Positions 5,917 to 29,153 of a DNA stretch of 64,000 nucleotides are shown here, in pieces; the stretch's first letter is position 1, and each line of letters starts with the position of its first letter. The DNA is taken from contig NW_003314285.1 in assembly GCF_000143415.4 (NCBI RefSeq), positions 1,933,013 through 1,997,012 on the forward strand. The letters run 5' to 3'. The position numbers and the translations under genes are program-made. Origin of the DNA: Selaginella moellendorffii. Lineage: Eukaryota > Plantae > Lycopodiophyta. The notes beneath the pieces were generated by a model. It searched no databases and was not told where the DNA came from. It saw nothing but the letters and a program-made list of their open reading frames with translations.

Positions 5917-7635
5917 CTACGCGAAATTCCGGGTCTTTTTGGTCAATCGCAGGGACGCAATTCCACTCGCCAGCAGCGCCGCCGCTGCAATTTTGCCGCC
6001 ATTTTCAGTGCCGAACTCGGCGACATTGATCCTGGCGTCGATCCATTTGTAGAGCGCGAGGTATGAATCATGGCCGAGGAGTGTGTAGAGCAATCGCGCC
6101 GGGGAGAGGATAGCCTGGTATGCTGCTGGGAGGTAAACAGTGAGGCCGAGCGCGTCAAACAGGGCATCCAGGAACCACTCGCTGTGGACCGAGGCAGCGA
6201 CTCCATTGACGACGATAGTTCCTTGGAGAGTCAATGGATTATAGAGGCCGGGCTTTGTAACGATCGAGATTCGTGTGACTGGGAATGGAGTCATGATCGA
6301 ATTGTTGGTGGGGGATGAAGCGGTCAACACATCTCCGACAAGAACGTCTTGCGCACGCTTGAATTCGACTCCACCTAGAAATGGTTCGTGAGCTTGGTGG
6401 AAAAAAAAGTGGTGGAAGGAAGAGATGACACACACCAGCTTTGAGCAGCGTTGGCACGAAATGCAGGCGCGAGAGCTCAAGGGTCTTTGAGTGAGATAGT
6501 TCCAGGTTGACGAAGTCACTCTTCTGCTCCAAGTCTCGGTGGCCGAAAGCATAGATTTCACTGAACTCGAGCCTCCCGTTCTTGAGCGTCCCAACCTTCA
6601 CGACACGACCAGAGGAAAAAGGTTTAGTGGAAGCGATGGATGATCAGGATAAATACCTTGTCACCGATTTGGAGCTGGCTCATCATCTTTGTCTCGCCCG
6701 TGGAAGTTTGCACCGTTGCATCCCCAGGGAAGCACGCACTCACGCAGCCAGCAGCCGCGCCAAGCTGAGCACTCACTCCCAAAACTCCAACGACGCAGAA
6801 AGGTGCCAATGGTCCCAGTCCCAAGCAACCTCCAACTCCCAACACTCCGGTGATTGCACCTCCGATTGCTCCTGCAAAAAGGAAGGAACGAGCTCAACGA
6901 GAAGAACATATGGATCATCCCGAGGGACCTTTCCCTGCTTCTTCTTTGCAGTCACCAAGCAAGAATCTTCGAGCTGCTTGGTGATCGCCAGAAGAGTTTG
7001 TGAGTGAAAGATGCTGCTCGAGTTCCAAGCGCTTCTTGTAGAGCCTGTCCACGTCACTGCCGGTCATGTACACACCACAGCCGCTCTTCTTAGCGTTGTT
7101 TGGGCAAACGATCTGGTAAGCATTCAGTGATTTTTGTTATTGCAAGATGGTCTATGGAGCTCGCTAAAACTTACAGCACTCTTGCGGCCATAGTTGTCTG
7201 TGAACACGAACTGTGTCCCGGATGAATCTGGAGCAGCACCACAGCCACCGGTTGCGACCACCTGGAGATAGTTTCCAGTCGTGAGCATGAGAAAGATCAA
7301 AGAAACAAAGGTACTTGTGTCTTGTTCTTTACCTTTAGCTTGAGGTTCTCGGTTCCTCCCCAGTCGCCACTTACCTTAGCAGTGTACTGGAGCCTTCCAG
7401 TTTTGACAATCATCTGGCAGATCTTGGTGATTGCGCTCGCAGGAACCGAGCCCCAAAGCAATGCGGGAGTCTTCGATGCGAGAAGAGATGTCGCGATCTG
7501 ATCGCCAGTAGTTCCAATGAAGGTGTTTGGCTTGCCTTTGGTGATCTTGGGAGTCGTGGCTTTGAAACTCACGTCTTGCGCATTGCAAACGCTGGAGATC
7601 ACAGCAAGAACAAGAAGAAATGAGACACTTTTCAT
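5917..7635 (-). CDS. Secreted Hog-domain (Hedgehog-type Hint + sterol-recognition-like region) precursor, ~468 aa, with an unrecognised N-terminal domain and a Gly-zipper peptide
   Basis: Hand-spliced GT-AG exons 7635-7333, 7261-7175, 7112-6929, 6871-6657, 6595-6436, 6374-5917 give 1407 nt in one open frame (an alternative exon 1 donor at 7315 keeps the frame). Signal peptide MKSVSFLLVLAVISSVCNA. Hint motifs A|CFPGDATV, MSQLQIGDKV, FSEIYAFGHRD, LELSRLHFV, AQDVLVGDVL, GLYNPLTLQGTIVVNGVAASVHS. SRR-like AYQAILSPARLLY and a hydrophobic C-terminal tail. Confidence 0.88.
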
Positions 7636-9401: not shown

Positions 9402-9602
9402 TACGACTAAACGATGGTAAGCGTAGCGATTACCACCATCGTCGTTCAGCTGCAACGCTTGAACCAACGGCTGGAAATCGTCCTAGTCAGTTGACGTGGC
9501 AATGACGTGGCGAGCGATGCCATTTTATGCTGACGCAGCCCTACATTGTTTCGTGGCAACCTTTTAAGTGGAGTCCGCCACCTTGTGTGGAGGGGGATTA
9601 GG

Positions 9603-9676
9603 AGGGATGTAGCGCAGATAGGTAGCGCATTTGTTTCGGGAACAAAAGGCCGCAGGTTCAAATCCTGTCATCCCTA
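9603..9676 (+). tRNA. tRNA-Pro(CGG), plastid trnP-type body
   Basis: 74 nt cloverleaf: acceptor AGGGATG/CATCCCT, D stem GCGC/GCGC, anticodon arm TTTGT-TT[CGG]GA-ACAAA, T arm GCAGG-TTCAAAT-CCTGT, discriminator A. Confidence 0.92.
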
Positions 9677-9751
9677 TCGACGTTCGTTAAAAGAAACACT
9701 AAGAAAGTATAAAAGCCGAGGAACGAAAGAGGCATGCTGTGGAGCATACAT

Positions 9752-9825
9752 AGGGATGTAGCGCAGATAGGTAGCGCGTTTGTTTAGGGAACAAAAGGAC
9801 GCAGGTTCAAATCCTGTCATCCCTA
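9752..9825 (+). tRNA. tRNA-Pro(AGG), plastid trnP-type body
   Basis: Same 74 nt cloverleaf with 3 differences from the first copy; anticodon AGG at 9786-9788. Confidence 0.92.
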
Positions 9826-9832
9826 TAGGCTC

Positions 9833-9838
9833 TTTTTT
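9833..9838 (+). terminator. Putative RNA polymerase III terminator (T6)
   Basis: TTTTTT 7 nt after the second tRNA; no T4 run between the two tRNAs. Confidence 0.6.
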
Positions 9839-9893
9839 GTTCTGCCAGTGATCTTAGATACGTTTTCCATTTCTCTTTTTGGAGCTCGCGGCT

Positions 9894-11241
9894 ATGGCTT
9901 GGGGAGGATTGCTTGGTTTCGATCATGGAATAATCCAGGCGCCATTGGGTCCAGACATCTCGGGGCCTGCTCTCGTAGCAGCGGTTGCAAATGCGGGGGC
10001 GATTGGAGTTCTTCGAGCTCCAGATCAGGTAAAAAACCTTTCTTTTTTTGCAAGGAAAAACGGGAATTTGACGACTCCAGGATGAGCCCGAGGTGCTGAG
10101 GGGGATGGTGAAGCGAACCAGGGAGCTGACGGATCGATCGTTTGGAGTGGGGATCATCCTGGATTTTCCACACGAGAAGATGCTCGAGGCTGTGATCCAG
10201 GAGCGTGTCGCTGTGCTGATGGTTTACTGGGGTGAATTTGGGAGTCATCTTGTCGACAAGATGCACCAAGCCGGAGTGAAAGTCGTGCATCAGGTTCGTG
10301 AGAAAAAAAAAAATGGCAGCTTTGTCGTGATTTTCTCGGGTTTTCGCACACGCAGGTAGGATCAGTGGCCGAGGCCAAAGACGCAGCGCTTGCTGGTGTG
10401 GATGCGATCATCGTCCAAGGTGTTGAAGCTGGCGGCCATGTCCGTGGAAAGGTGGTGATTTTCTCTTGAAACTTTCTTTCAAAGACTTACGTAGAGGTGA
10501 ATTTTGGTCGTGAAGGAGGGACTCATAGCGCTGTTGCCCAAAGTTGTGGATGCCGTTTGGAAGTATAAGATTCCCGTGATTGCGGCTGGAGGGATCGTTG
10601 ATGCTCGTGGCTATGTCGCTGCTTTGGCACTTGGTGCGAAGGGAGTTTGCCTTGGAACAAGGTAAAGTGTTTCGATTAGTTCTTGAGTTTTCATCCGCGA
10701 AAGCTTACATTTTTCTTGGAAAGATTTCTTGCTACCTTGGAGTCGAATGCGCATCCGATCTACAAGAAAATGGTGCTGGCCGCGTCCGCTGGCGATACCG
10801 AGCTCAACAACATTTTCGGAAGGAAACGGTGGCCAAATGCTCCACAGAGAGTGATCAAAACTCCATTTTTCCTGGAGTGGAGAGACAAGCTCGGCCCCGA
10901 CGAGTCCGAGCAAGGGCAGGTGACGATCGGTGAAACAATCGTCCATGGCAAAGTACGATCGAGCTCACGCTTCGCCAAAGATCTTTCTAAGCCCCCCCCC
11001 CATTCTCTTGCAGAAGGAAGAGGTGAAGCGCTTCTCTGGAAAAGTTCCCAATTCCTCCGCGACTGGGAAGATCGAGGAGATGGCAATGTACGCGGGCGAG
11101 GGCGTGGGGTTGATCGATGAGATCTTGCCCGCCGCGAGCGTCGTCCGGGGACTGGTGGAAGGCGCCCAAAACATCATCCGCTACCATCTCCAAGTGCCCT
11201 GGGACGACAACGCCAACAAGCCCCACGCCTACATGGCATAG
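9894..11241 (+). CDS. Nitronate monooxygenase / 2-nitropropane dioxygenase-like FMN TIM-barrel protein (multi-exon)
   Basis: [55 protein letters not shown]...[35 protein letters not shown]. Confidence 0.9.
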
Positions 11242-15906: not shown

Positions 15907-17940
15907 ATGGCGCGGGACGGTAAGCGCCATCGCAGCAGTAGCCCGGATCGCGGCGGCGGCGGCGGCGACAGGGACGAGGATTCTAAGCATCGTAAGTACT
16001 CCCATCACCACAGCCGCGATAGAGATCGCGATAGAGATAGAGACAGAGATAGCCGAGATAGGGGTCGAGACCGGGAGAGAAGCAGCAGGGAGAGGAGCCG
16101 CAGCCCGGACAGGAGGGGGAGGAGCAGGCATTCTTCACGCAGCCCATCCCGTGACAATGAGCCCGGCAGGCACAATTCTTCCAGTAGAGCATTTGGAAAG
16201 TGGAAGCAAAGGAGTCCCAATCCTGGTGAGAAGTGGGAGAGACGCGATGAGCAGCAGCAGCAGCAGCAGGAAGAGCTTGTGCCGAATAGCAAAGAGCGCG
16301 AGCAGCTGGACAAGCAATCGATGAAAGCTCTGGCAGCGATCCAGGACGGGAGTAAGAAAGCCAAGAGAGTGATTGTCAAGCAGCGCGGCAAGTTCGACTG
16401 GGAGAACACCGAGGACACGTCCCAGGACATGATTCCTATATGCCACGGCCAGCTTCTCTTTGGACGGGGTTTCTATGCCGGCATGGATCGACGAGAGCAA
16501 AAGAAGCAGTCGGCAAAGATCGACCGGGAATCCAAAGGACAGATCGAACCCAAGTCACTGAAATCGAGCTATGATCCTTTCGACGACATGCCGGTGGACA
16601 GGCACTGGTCCGAGAAGGAGATACACGAGATGACGTCGAGAGACTGGAGGATCTTTCGAGAGGACTATAACATTTCCTACAAGGGGTCGAGGTTCCCGAA
16701 TCCTGCTAGGAACTGGGAGGAGTCTGGGATTTGCCCCGAGATACTCAGGGCCGTGCAAGAAGCCGGATACAAGAAGCCTACTCCCATCCAGATGGCTTCC
16801 ATTCCACTGGGACTCCAGCAGAGAGATGTTATTGGGATCGCCGGGACTGGCTCCGGGAAGACGGCGGCCTTCGTGATACCGATGCTCATGTACGTGTCCA
16901 GGCTTCCCAAGATGACTTTGGAGAGAGCCATCGAGGGGCCTTACGCGCTGGTGATGGCTCCAACCACGGAGCTCGCGCAGCAGATCCAGGAGGAGACCGT
17001 GAAGTTGGCGAAGTATATGGACATCAACGTGCTGTCGCTCGTCGCCGGAGAAGCCATCGGGGGGCAGAGCTCGAAGCTACTGCAAGGGTGTGAGATCGTC
17101 ATCGCCACTCCGGGACGGCTCTTGCACTGCCTGGAGCAGGGATACGCGGTGCTCCACCAGTGCAACTACGTGGTTCTGGACGAGGGCGACAGGATGATCG
17201 CGCTGGGTTTCGAGGAACAGGTGATTGACGCCTTGGAAGCGATGCCGTCGAGCAACATGAAGCCCGAGAGCGAGGACGTGGAGCTGGAGGACAGGATCTA
17301 CCGGACGACGTACATGTTCAGCGCGACGATGCCGCCGGCGGTGGAGAGGCTGGCCAAGAAGTACCTGAGGAACCCGGTGGTGGTGACGATCGAGGAGATG
17401 AGCAAGCGCATCAGCCAGAAGGTGATGATGGTGGACGAGGAGGAGAAGCCCAAGCGGCTGCGGCGGCTGCTGGACGAGCTGGGCGAGATGTCGACGATCG
17501 TGTTCGTCAACACCAAGAAGCAGGCGGACAAGGTGTCGAAGCAGCTCCACGACATGGGGATCAAGGTGGCGACCATCCACGGCGGCAAGACGCAGCAGAA
17601 GCGGCAGACCAACTTCCAGGACTTTCGGAGCAAGCGGCGGAGCTGCCTCATCGCGACGGACGTGGTGGGGCGCGGGATCGACGTCCCGGACGTCGGGCAC
17701 ATCGTCAACTACGACATGCCGTCCACGGTGGAGATGTATATCCATCGCATTGGGCGGACGGGGCGGGCGGGCAAGAGCGGCGCCGCCACCACCTTCCTGA
17801 CGCTCAATGACTCCGAGGTGTTCTACGATCTCAAGCAGCTGTTAGTCCGGACCAAGAACCCGGTGCCGCCGGAGCTGGCCAGGCACGAAGCTGCCAAAGT
17901 CAAGGTTGCGAAAGCCGCCACAACTTCTGGAGCCGAGTGA
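15907..17940 (+). CDS. PRP28: PRP28/DDX23 (RH21-like) DEAD-box RNA helicase, intronless, with variant motifs
   Basis: RD/RS-rich N-terminus, [31 protein letters not shown] motif, [25 protein letters not shown]. Confidence 0.88.
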
Positions 17941-27284: not shown

Positions 27285-29153
27285 TTATCTTCCAAGACAT
27301 GCATGCGAGATCAACACATAGGGAGAAGAATCTCTCCACGCCATTGGTTCCAAAACACTCTGTGATCCAGAGTCTAATGTCTGTAGATGCAGTTTACATG
27401 ACCCAGCAAAGCTTGTCCATGTCGCATCGTCGGGCACAAATGGCATACACTGGATAAGTTCGTGGGCATCTCCCACTCGTCCCAAACGCCCAAGCATGTC
27501 CGCCACGCAGCAGTAGTGTTGAGCAGTCGCTCTGATGCCCCGCTCCACCATAGCCACAAAGCTCTGGAATCCCCTTTGTAGATCACCCGCATGGTTGCAA
27601 GCAACGAGCACTCCCAGAAAGGCGATTGCATCCGGCATCACACCCTGAAGCTCCATTGCCAACGAAAGCTCGAGAGCTTGAGTATGATGCCCGTTTTGGG
27701 CGTATGTTGTGATCATCGCAGACCATGGGGCAGTGGATTCAATAGGTCCACGCTCGAACATATCTCTTGCTTCTGCGATATGCCCGTTGTGGGCATATGC
27801 GACAGCCATGGACGTCAAGGAGATTTCACTCCACTGTGGCATTTTGTCAAAAACATCCTTTGCTTTGCTCAGTTGCCCGTTTTGGGCATACCCAGACACC
27901 AACGCTGTCCAAGATACCACGTCCACTTCTGCGGTCATTTTCTCGAGCATGGTTCTAGCTTCCTCGACATGCCCGTTCTGGGCATAAGCCTGGATGATCA
28001 CATTCCAAGCCACGGAGTCTTTCCTCTCCAGCGATAGAAACAGCCTTGTTGCTCGCTCCAAATCCCCGCATTGGGCATATACTTGCATCATCACTGTCCT
28101 AGAAAACGCGTCCGGATTTGGTATCTCCTTGAAAAATGCCTCACAAGCTTTTAGATCTCCGCTGGCTGCGTAGGCTGTGAGAATCGCTGTCCATGTCTGG
28201 TCATTGCGGTCGTGCATCCGGTCAAACACGTGTTGAGCAGCTCTGAGAAATCCATGCTGGCCGTAAATCTGGATCACTGAGCTGCAAATTACAACGTCGT
28301 GCCCCGACATTCTCTCAAATACCATCTTTGCTTGCTCGATCTCGCCGCTCTTGGCCAGTGCCGTGAGCAGCGTTGTCCATGACACGATTGTCTTCTGCGA
28401 CATTGTCTCAAAAACACTCTTTGCAAGACTTAGAGACCCATTCTCAGTGTAAGCCAGCATCACAGTGTTGAAAGAAACGACCGTGTAAGACGGCATCCGG
28501 TCGAAAAATTCAACAAAGTCACCTGTTTGGGCATATGCCGAAAGCATTGTGTTCCACGAGAGCTCATTCCGTTTGGCCATTTTCTCAAACAATTCCCTTA
28601 CTATTTTCGTATCACCATTTTCGGCATAAGCTTGCATGAGCCCGTTCCACGAGCTCTCGTTGCGAACAGGCATCCTGTCAAACATTTCCTTGGCAGATTC
28701 CAAATGCCCGTTTTGGGCATAAGCTGAAGTTATCGCGTTCCAAGCAACAACACTTTGATCCGCCATGGCATCAAAGAGCTCTTGCGATTTTCTTAGACAA
28801 CCTCTCTGAGCGTAGCATGTAAGCAGTATTGTGTGTGCTACCTCATCCCTGGCTGGCATTATATCAAACATTTGTTGGGCTTGGTTGATAAGCCCGTTCT
28901 GGGTATATGCTCCCAGCATGAGACACCACGAATAGACATTTCGCTGAAGAGTGCTGTTAAAACAATCGTACGCTTCAGTAACACTACCGCACTTCCCAAA
29001 CATTTGTACAAGTAAATTTCTGAGGTAAGTGCCTAGAATAATGTTTGTAGATAGGATTTCCTTGTGAAGCTTCCTTGCACCAGATAAATCTCTTGTATTT
29101 GAGCAATGCTTTAAGCGCCCAACCCAGTAGTCTGATGATTTACTTTGCCCCAT
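27285..29153 (-). CDS. PLS-class PPR protein with short (~31 aa) repeats and a truncated E domain; likely organellar RNA-editing specificity factor
   Basis: 622 aa ORF with repeated SW(N/T)xxxxAYAQNGH...AK.MF..M motifs; HYCCVADMLGRLG, MPFVPD..TW, SSPYVLIS; no DYW domain. Confidence 0.92.
   Translation of the reverse strand: MGQSKSSDYWVGRLKHCSNTRDLSGARKLHKEILSTNIILGTYLRNLLVQMFGKCGSVTEAYDCFNSTLQRNVYSWCLMLGAYTQNGLINQAQQMFDIMPARDEVAHTILLTCYAQRGCLRKSQELFDAMADQSVVAWNAITSAYAQNGHLESAKEMFDRMPVRNESSWNGLMQAYAENGDTKIVRELFEKMAKRNELSWNTMLSAYAQTGDFVEFFDRMPSYTVVSFNTVMLAYTENGSLSLAKSVFETMSQKTIVSWTTLLTALAKSGEIEQAKMVFERMSGHDVVICSSVIQIYGQHGFLRAAQHVFDRMHDRNDQTWTAILTAYAASGDLKACEAFFKEIPNPDAFSRTVMMQVYAQCGDLERATRLFLSLERKDSVAWNVIIQAYAQNGHVEEARTMLEKMTAEVDVVSWTALVSGYAQNGQLSKAKDVFDKMPQWSEISLTSMAVAYAHNGHIAEARDMFERGPIESTAPWSAMITTYAQNGHHTQALELSLAMELQGVMPDAIAFLGVLVACNHAGDLQRGFQSFVAMVERGIRATAQHYCCVADMLGRLGRVGDAHELIQCMPFVPDDATWTSFAGSCKLHLQTLDSGSQSVLEPMAWRDSSPYVLISHACLGR

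Follow-up and report, generated by a model that had tools for sequence, protein, structure and literature searches.

Two nuclear tRNA-Pro genes with CGG and AGG anticodons and a chloroplast-type body in Selaginella moellendorffii

The nuclear genome of Selaginella moellendorffii carries two adjacent, intact tRNA-Pro genes whose anticodons are CGG and AGG and whose body is of the chloroplast trnP-UGG type. Taking origin and proposed function jointly, we consider it very probable that these are two functional nuclear genes descended from chloroplast trnP-UGG. The integrity of the genes, their plastid ancestry, their nuclear location, their RNA polymerase III (Pol III) signals, and their coverage by contigs of probable transcriptome sequencing (RNA-seq) runs were observed in S. 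moellendorffii itself.

The genus offers a precedent. Berrissou et al. (2024, PNAS, PMC11573648) found that the nuclear tRNA-Pro genes of S. kraussiana fall into two types. In that species, plastid-like tRNA-Pro with the anticodons UGG, CGG, and AGG is expressed, carries inosine at position 34 (I34) in the AGG species, and shows enrichment in purified chloroplasts, while tRNA-Pro of the eukaryotic type remains in the cytosol; the expression evidence includes tRNA-seq of purified chloroplasts (PMC11573648). The model put forward there has plastid trnP-UGG transferred to the nucleus, triplicated, and mutated at position 34. The S. moellendorffii pair is thus a further example of a published kind and not a discovery. 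The presence of intact CGG and AGG genes in the reference genome of the genus suggests that the system is not peculiar to S. kraussiana.

An intact gene pair in nuclear DNA

We analyzed a stretch of 64,000 nucleotides (the window), to which all coordinates refer. The features that bear on the argument are as follows.

9562..9568, + strand: A/T-rich, TATA-like TTTTAAG found by motif scan, roughly at -41 to -35 relative to the CGG gene, with a CAA at -46
9603..9676, + strand: tRNA-Pro(CGG), 74 nt, plastid-type body; anticodon 9637-9639, A box 9610-9622, B box 9655-9665
9677..9751, + strand: spacer, 75 nt, without a T-run of 4 or more, covered by contigs of runs X1, X2, and X12
9707-9715, + strand: TATA-like GTATAAAAG within the spacer, at about -45 to -37 of the AGG gene
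9752..9825, + strand: tRNA-Pro(AGG), 74 nt, plastid-type body; anticodon 9786-9788, A box 9759-9771, B box 9804-9814
9833..9838, + strand: run of six T (T6), starting 7 nt past the AGG gene, the sole T-run of 4 or more in 9566-9862
9893..10665, + strand: 5' part of an intron-split nitronate monooxygenase (NMO)-like gene, recognized by open reading frames (ORFs) in changing frames and by Pfam NMO

In the complete 64 kb, ARAGORN recognized a pair of tRNA genes and no others: on the + strand, tRNA-Pro(cgg) occupies 9603-9676 and tRNA-Pro(agg) occupies 9751-9826. The Rfam model RF00005 (gathering score 29) matched the CGG gene at 9603-9676 (70.1 bits, E 3e-13) and the AGG gene at 9752-9825 (68.6 bits, E 7.8e-13), and we adopted these 74-nt limits because the plastid homologues have the same ones. 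The minimum-free-energy structure of each gene is a cloverleaf, with 21 of 21 stem pairs standard, including one G-U at 49-65. The CGG gene has an A1-U72 pair and an A73 discriminator, and CCA is not encoded. The two genes are identical at 71 of 74 positions and differ only at positions 26 (A/G), 34 (C/A), and 47 (C/A, in the variable loop), while their flanks do not align with each other. An earlier reading made from the sequence only had described two intact 74-nt tRNAs in which the stems are untouched and the changes fall on the wobble base, position 26, and the variable loop; these calls and folds bear it out on both counts, and the start and end strings that it quoted are exact.

The pair is located in nuclear DNA rather than in an organelle genome. 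From the coordinates, the window corresponds to the terminal 64 kb of the 1,997,012-bp nuclear scaffold GL377589.1 (GCA_000143415.2), and the 622-aa product of window positions 27288-29153 (- strand) has an exact record on that scaffold. When the whole window was compared by blastn with 118 plastid trnP loci, similarity was found only at 9597-9826, with no plastid DNA flanking the pair. The expectation of a nuclear setting free of adjoining plastid sequence therefore held, and the neighbor of the pair is an intron-split gene: its ATG lies at 9893, 67 nt after the AGG gene, the reading frame breaks at a GT at 10031 and continues in other frames, and the exon at 10504-10665 matches Pfam NMO (PF03060, E 2.2e-14). 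Organelle contamination of the assembly was rejected on the confinement of plastid similarity to 9597-9826 together with the record on GL377589.1.

A scan for sigma-70 promoters gave no match, as expected of a nuclear locus. Elsewhere in the window, an ORF at 7297-7635 (- strand) encodes 112 aa with a signal-peptide-like N terminus (MKSVSFLLVLAVISSVCNA…); neither a Pfam match nor a record of the exact product was found for it. Exact-protein look-ups for the ORFs at 15907-17937 and 7300-7635, aimed at a second haplotype, returned no record.

Transcription signals and contig coverage

Both genes keep an intact A box (TAGCGCAGATAGG) and B box (GGTTCAAATCC), which on direct reading fit the Pol III consensus. 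The two TATA-like elements are putative upstream elements, whose role here would follow by analogy with plant tRNA genes, where elements of this type have a known role (cited in PMC11573648). A motif scan found no CAA within -1 to -10 of either gene. Downstream, T6 is likely the Pol III terminator of the AGG gene and probably that of the whole pair. No T-run of 4 or more lies between the genes, and the CGG gene is therefore without a terminator of its own, an arrangement that predicts a two-tRNA precursor. T6 ends about 10 nt before the start, at 9849, of a contig of high depth and lies 55 nt before the NMO-like ATG at 9893; from this spacing, the tRNA pair sits in the promoter region of an RNA polymerase II (Pol II) gene.

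Part of the stretch is contained in 20 public runs, four of which (X1, X2, X12, and X20) were aligned, all as assembled contigs. That these four are RNA is a guess from the index; with 25 to 56 Mb in 66,000 to 290,000 contigs each, they were taken as transcriptome-like. In X1, a contig runs from 9601 through both genes and T6 into the NMO gene. In X2, a contig of a second allele is bounded at 9602, so that boundaries at 9601 and 9602 come from two studies and two alleles. A contig of X20 starts at 9747/8. In X12, one contig spans 9672-9831, stopping just before T6, and a separate, much deeper contig starts at 9849. None of the four probable RNA-seq runs covers 9480-9600.

These contigs fit transcription that starts 1 to 5 nt before each tRNA and crosses the spacer, and they fit an NMO mRNA start about 10 nt past the terminator, the fit in both cases falling short of proof, as neither the start, end, or strand of a transcript nor a mature CCA end or I34 can be established from assembled contigs. 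The locus is perhaps transcribed as one two-tRNA precursor. Some contigs join the tRNAs to the NMO mRNA, and these joins may be assembly merges or read-through; since contigs extend into the NMO mRNA, Pol II transcription or read-through, rather than Pol III, may account for some of the coverage.

The second allele, seen in X2 and X20, has C>G at 9832, T5 in place of T6, and a 9-nt insertion (TATTTGTGT) after 9848; the assembly of S. moellendorffii probably contains it as its other haplotype. Over 9602-9831, a span that takes in both genes and the spacer, the alleles do not differ, which makes within-species data uninformative on selection.

Plastid ancestry and history of the pair

We compared the pair with two reference sets, both collected with patterns that fix many positions, and judged relationships by identities together with diagnostic states, namely the A1-U72 pair, the anticodon stem (TTTGT/ACAAA), and the 3' third of each gene. 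For the plastid set, a pattern that covers the 5' two-thirds of the gene and allows any base at position 34 matched at least 120 metagenome contigs; two loci from human-gut metagenome assemblies that resemble plant plastid contigs (L005 and L041) were excluded from all analyses of this set. ARAGORN called 116 tRNA-Pro genes among the matching contigs, and the anticodon is UGG in all 116, in keeping with the prior claim that plastid trnP does not use AGG or CGG. In 107 of the 116 tRNA-Pro genes listed, trnW-CCA lies 34 to 284 nt away on the same strand, and at one locus (L056), Pfam matches give the order rpl33-psaJ-trnP-trnW-petG-petL-psbE, which is the plastome arrangement.

Among the matches listed, the window genes are identical to plastid trnP-UGG at 61 to 68 of 74 positions (nearest plastid gene: 67 of 74 for the CGG gene and 68 of 74 for the AGG gene), values to be read with the fact that the search pattern was taken from the window and fixes 40 of the 74 positions, the unbiased comparison being that over positions 44-74 and the free positions. 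The window genes and plastid trnP have in common A1-U72 and an anticodon stem of TTTGT/ACAAA. Judged from these comparisons, the body of the pair derives from plastid trnP-UGG. The sequence-only reading had recognized it as the body of land-plant trnP-UGG, an assignment upheld by the identity of up to 68 of 74 and by the rpl33-psaJ-trnP-trnW-petG context of the plastid gene.

The plastid set also contains two oddities. On the metagenome plastid-type contigs L021 (2672-2745) and L038 (5386-5459), trnP has a replaced 3' acceptor strand (…CCTGATTTTCTTA); each is likely a pseudogene or a copy moved to another compartment.

The second set came from a looser pattern run over bacterial and archaeal genomes, from which 120 tRNA-Pro genes were sampled. 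Their anticodons are UGG in 78, CGG in 36, GGG in 6, and AGG in none. The claim that AGG and CGG are eukaryote-style anticodons thus stands for AGG (0 of 120) and fails for CGG as a eukaryote-only anticodon (36 of 120). The best of the sampled bacterial genes is identical to the window genes at 62 of 74 positions, those of cyanobacteria at 60 or 61, and all 120, cyanobacteria included, have C1. A bacterial origin of the pair was rejected on this ceiling of 62 of 74 and on C1 in all 120 sampled genes.

It has nonetheless to be weighed whether the CGG and AGG genes come from a plastid trnP-GGG or from a horizontally acquired bacterial tRNA-Pro(CGG) instead of trnP-UGG. The frequency of CGG among the sampled bacterial genes and the single bacterial-like nuclear tRNA-Arg of S. 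kraussiana speak for such a source, as does the listing of trnP-GGG besides trnP-UGG in the plastomes of Isoetes flaccida and Equisetum arvense (PMC3087542). It follows from that listing that the statement of a single trnP-UGG in all non-Selaginella plastomes (PMC11573648) is not general. Against bacterial descent, the sampled bacterial genes are all C1-G72 and reach at most 62 of 74, whereas the window genes have A1-U72 and TTTGT/ACAAA and match trnP-UGG at up to 68 of 74. The 71-of-74 identity of the CGG and AGG copies and a UGG sibling with seven differences in the same genome count against either source; the sibling and the 92% identity to trnP-UGG make trnP-GGG descent in particular unlikely. 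We regard this alternative as a whole as highly improbable.

In two runs, the UGG sibling is found on a contig apart, between flanks of its own; it has T at 34 and at 38 and shows seven differences in all. Looking for such a gene had been part of the sequence-only reading, and it exists as a third gene with different flanks. All three anticodons, CGG and AGG in the window and UGG in contigs, were thus found on the same body. A16, A17a, and A38 occur in both tandem copies and in none of the plastid genes sampled; the pair therefore arose by duplication in the nucleus, after those changes.

The changes are confined to unpaired positions. Relative to the nearest plastid variants, the AGG gene has six differences and the CGG gene seven, all within the 32 unpaired positions. 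With shared changes counted once, there are about nine events, none in the 42 paired positions; an even spread would give this with a probability of (32/74)^9, about 5e-4, a rough figure for which the plastid variants stand in for the true plastid ancestor.

This distribution bears on the possibility that the locus is a dead nuclear plastid insertion (NUPT), intact by chance and without function. The plastid-like body and the missing CAA motif close upstream are what such an insertion would show. Yet plastid similarity stops at the gene borders, with no contiguous plastid stretch, and there are two copies and a UGG sibling, all intact. The changes have left the stems untouched (21 of 21 pairs intact), and those in the anticodon produce precisely the set used in eukaryotic decoding. 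The locus has T6 as a likely terminator and is covered by contigs of probable RNA runs, and S. kraussiana expresses and imports the same three tRNAs (PMC11573648). Selaginella plastomes lack trnP according to the same paper, so that a recent donor is missing. A functionless insertion is, in our judgment, very unlikely, and we return to the reading of two functional genes of trnP-UGG descent.

Proposed function and comparison with known systems

We propose that, in the lineage of Selaginella, trnP-UGG was transferred to the nuclear genome and then duplicated. One copy would have become the solitary UGG gene elsewhere in the genome, and a further duplication would have produced the tandem pair, whose members then acquired different wobble bases, C and A. 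Transcription by Pol III would rely on the internal A and B boxes, which both genes have kept; transcripts of the CGG gene most likely continue through the AGG gene to T6 at 9833-9838, giving a two-tRNA precursor, and the AGG gene may also initiate independently. Nuclear tRNA-processing enzymes would excise the tRNAs, CCA would be added, and A34 of the AGG tRNA would be deaminated to inosine. Charged or uncharged, the tRNAs would then be imported into chloroplasts, whose genome has lost trnP; import into mitochondria, where no tRNA is encoded, and use in the cytosol are possible as well.

General knowledge of the enzymes involved is compatible with this route. For bacterial-type prolyl-tRNA synthetases, the identity elements are A73 and the anticodon, and for eukaryotic cytosolic ones mainly G35 and G36; either compartment could thus charge a tRNA that combines A73 with an NGG anticodon. 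The enzyme that converts A34 to inosine in tRNA-Pro is the eukaryotic ADAT2/3, and A34 editing would therefore precede import.

For mature expression, I34, and import in S. moellendorffii, we draw on the S. kraussiana paper or on inference. The history suggested for this locus by the sequence-only reading, namely transfer, duplication, anticodon change, and reimport, is the model published for S. kraussiana, and its statement that plastid import of plastid-like nuclear tRNAs had been reported in the genus agrees with that work (S. kraussiana, PMC11573648); import would take place here by analogy. Its further statement that Selaginella organelle genomes have lost many tRNA genes is borne out by a mean of 11.6 tRNA genes in Selaginella plastomes and zero in the mitochondrial DNA of S. 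moellendorffii.

The tRNAs might instead be functional as extra isodecoders that serve only or mainly in the cytosol and are not imported in S. moellendorffii. AGG, read as inosine, and CGG are in the cytosolic decoding style, and in S. kraussiana the plastid-like UGG and CGG tRNAs match the eukaryotic ones in total-RNA abundance, and the authors propose an additional use in the cytosol. In S. kraussiana chloroplasts, however, only plastid-like tRNA-Pro is enriched and the eukaryotic type is not; moreover, most tRNA genes are lost from Selaginella plastomes and the mitochondria of S. moellendorffii have none, so the organelles must import tRNA-Pro from somewhere. We consider a purely or mainly cytosolic role very unlikely and retain import as the probable fate of these tRNAs.

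A more specific picture can be drawn tentatively, and we think it possible though rather doubtful: that the pair forms one Pol III unit of two tRNAs with a single T6, placed in the promoter of a protein gene and supplying both chloroplasts and mitochondria, and that the trio predates the split of the two species. If so, a bacterial-type tRNA-Pro would be supplied to chloroplasts and to the tRNA-less mitochondria of S. moellendorffii, and the UGG/CGG/AGG trio in both species would date transfer and diversification before the split of distant Selaginella lineages.

Organellar tRNA genes have very rarely been transferred to the nucleus in functional form: a paper of 2026 (PMC13128298) counts only two known cases, the Selaginella tRNA-Pro being the first. 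The tRNA genes of S. moellendorffii have been annotated for PlantRNA 2.0; our literature search found no paper describing the CGG/AGG pair in this species, and a full-text search with three tRNA sequence strings found none either. The additions made here are modest: the S. moellendorffii copies, their tandem arrangement without an internal terminator, the contig evidence for a joint transcript, and the position in a protein-gene promoter. The pair raises no new question by itself. It does provide a well-assembled locus for asking what a transferred plastid tRNA gene requires of Pol III, whether the tandem is one transcription unit, and how chloroplasts, and perhaps mitochondria, choose the tRNAs of this kind that they import.

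Compared with land-plant plastid trnP-UGG, the window genes share the A1-U72 pair, A73, and the D, anticodon, and T stems. They differ in their CGG and AGG anticodons and in A16, A17a, and A38, which are absent from the plastid set; unlike the plastid gene, they have no adjoining trnW-CCA, psaJ, or petG, and they are nuclear, with a likely Pol III terminator.

The closest known system is that of the S. kraussiana plastid-like genes, as far as the published description goes: the genus, the nuclear location, the trnP-UGG body, the UGG/CGG/AGG set, and the A and B boxes are the same, as is the inferred history of transfer, multiplication, and change at position 34. In S. kraussiana, a T-stretch lies downstream of all three genes, whereas none follows the CGG gene here, and the S. 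moellendorffii pair is in tandem, 75 nt apart, and may be one transcription unit. The plastid-like tRNA-iMet encoded in the nucleus of Balanophoraceae (PMC13128298) is likewise a plastid tRNA gene that resides in the nucleus, is expressed there, and lacks an upstream CAA, but it concerns another tRNA in a nonphotosynthetic angiosperm lineage and has undergone no anticodon diversification. In the mitochondrial import of cytosolic tRNAs in plants, too, nucleus-encoded tRNAs replace lost organellar tRNA genes. The tRNAs imported in that system are normally of eukaryotic type, whereas the Selaginella tRNA-Pro is organellar in ancestry and its documented destination is the chloroplast.
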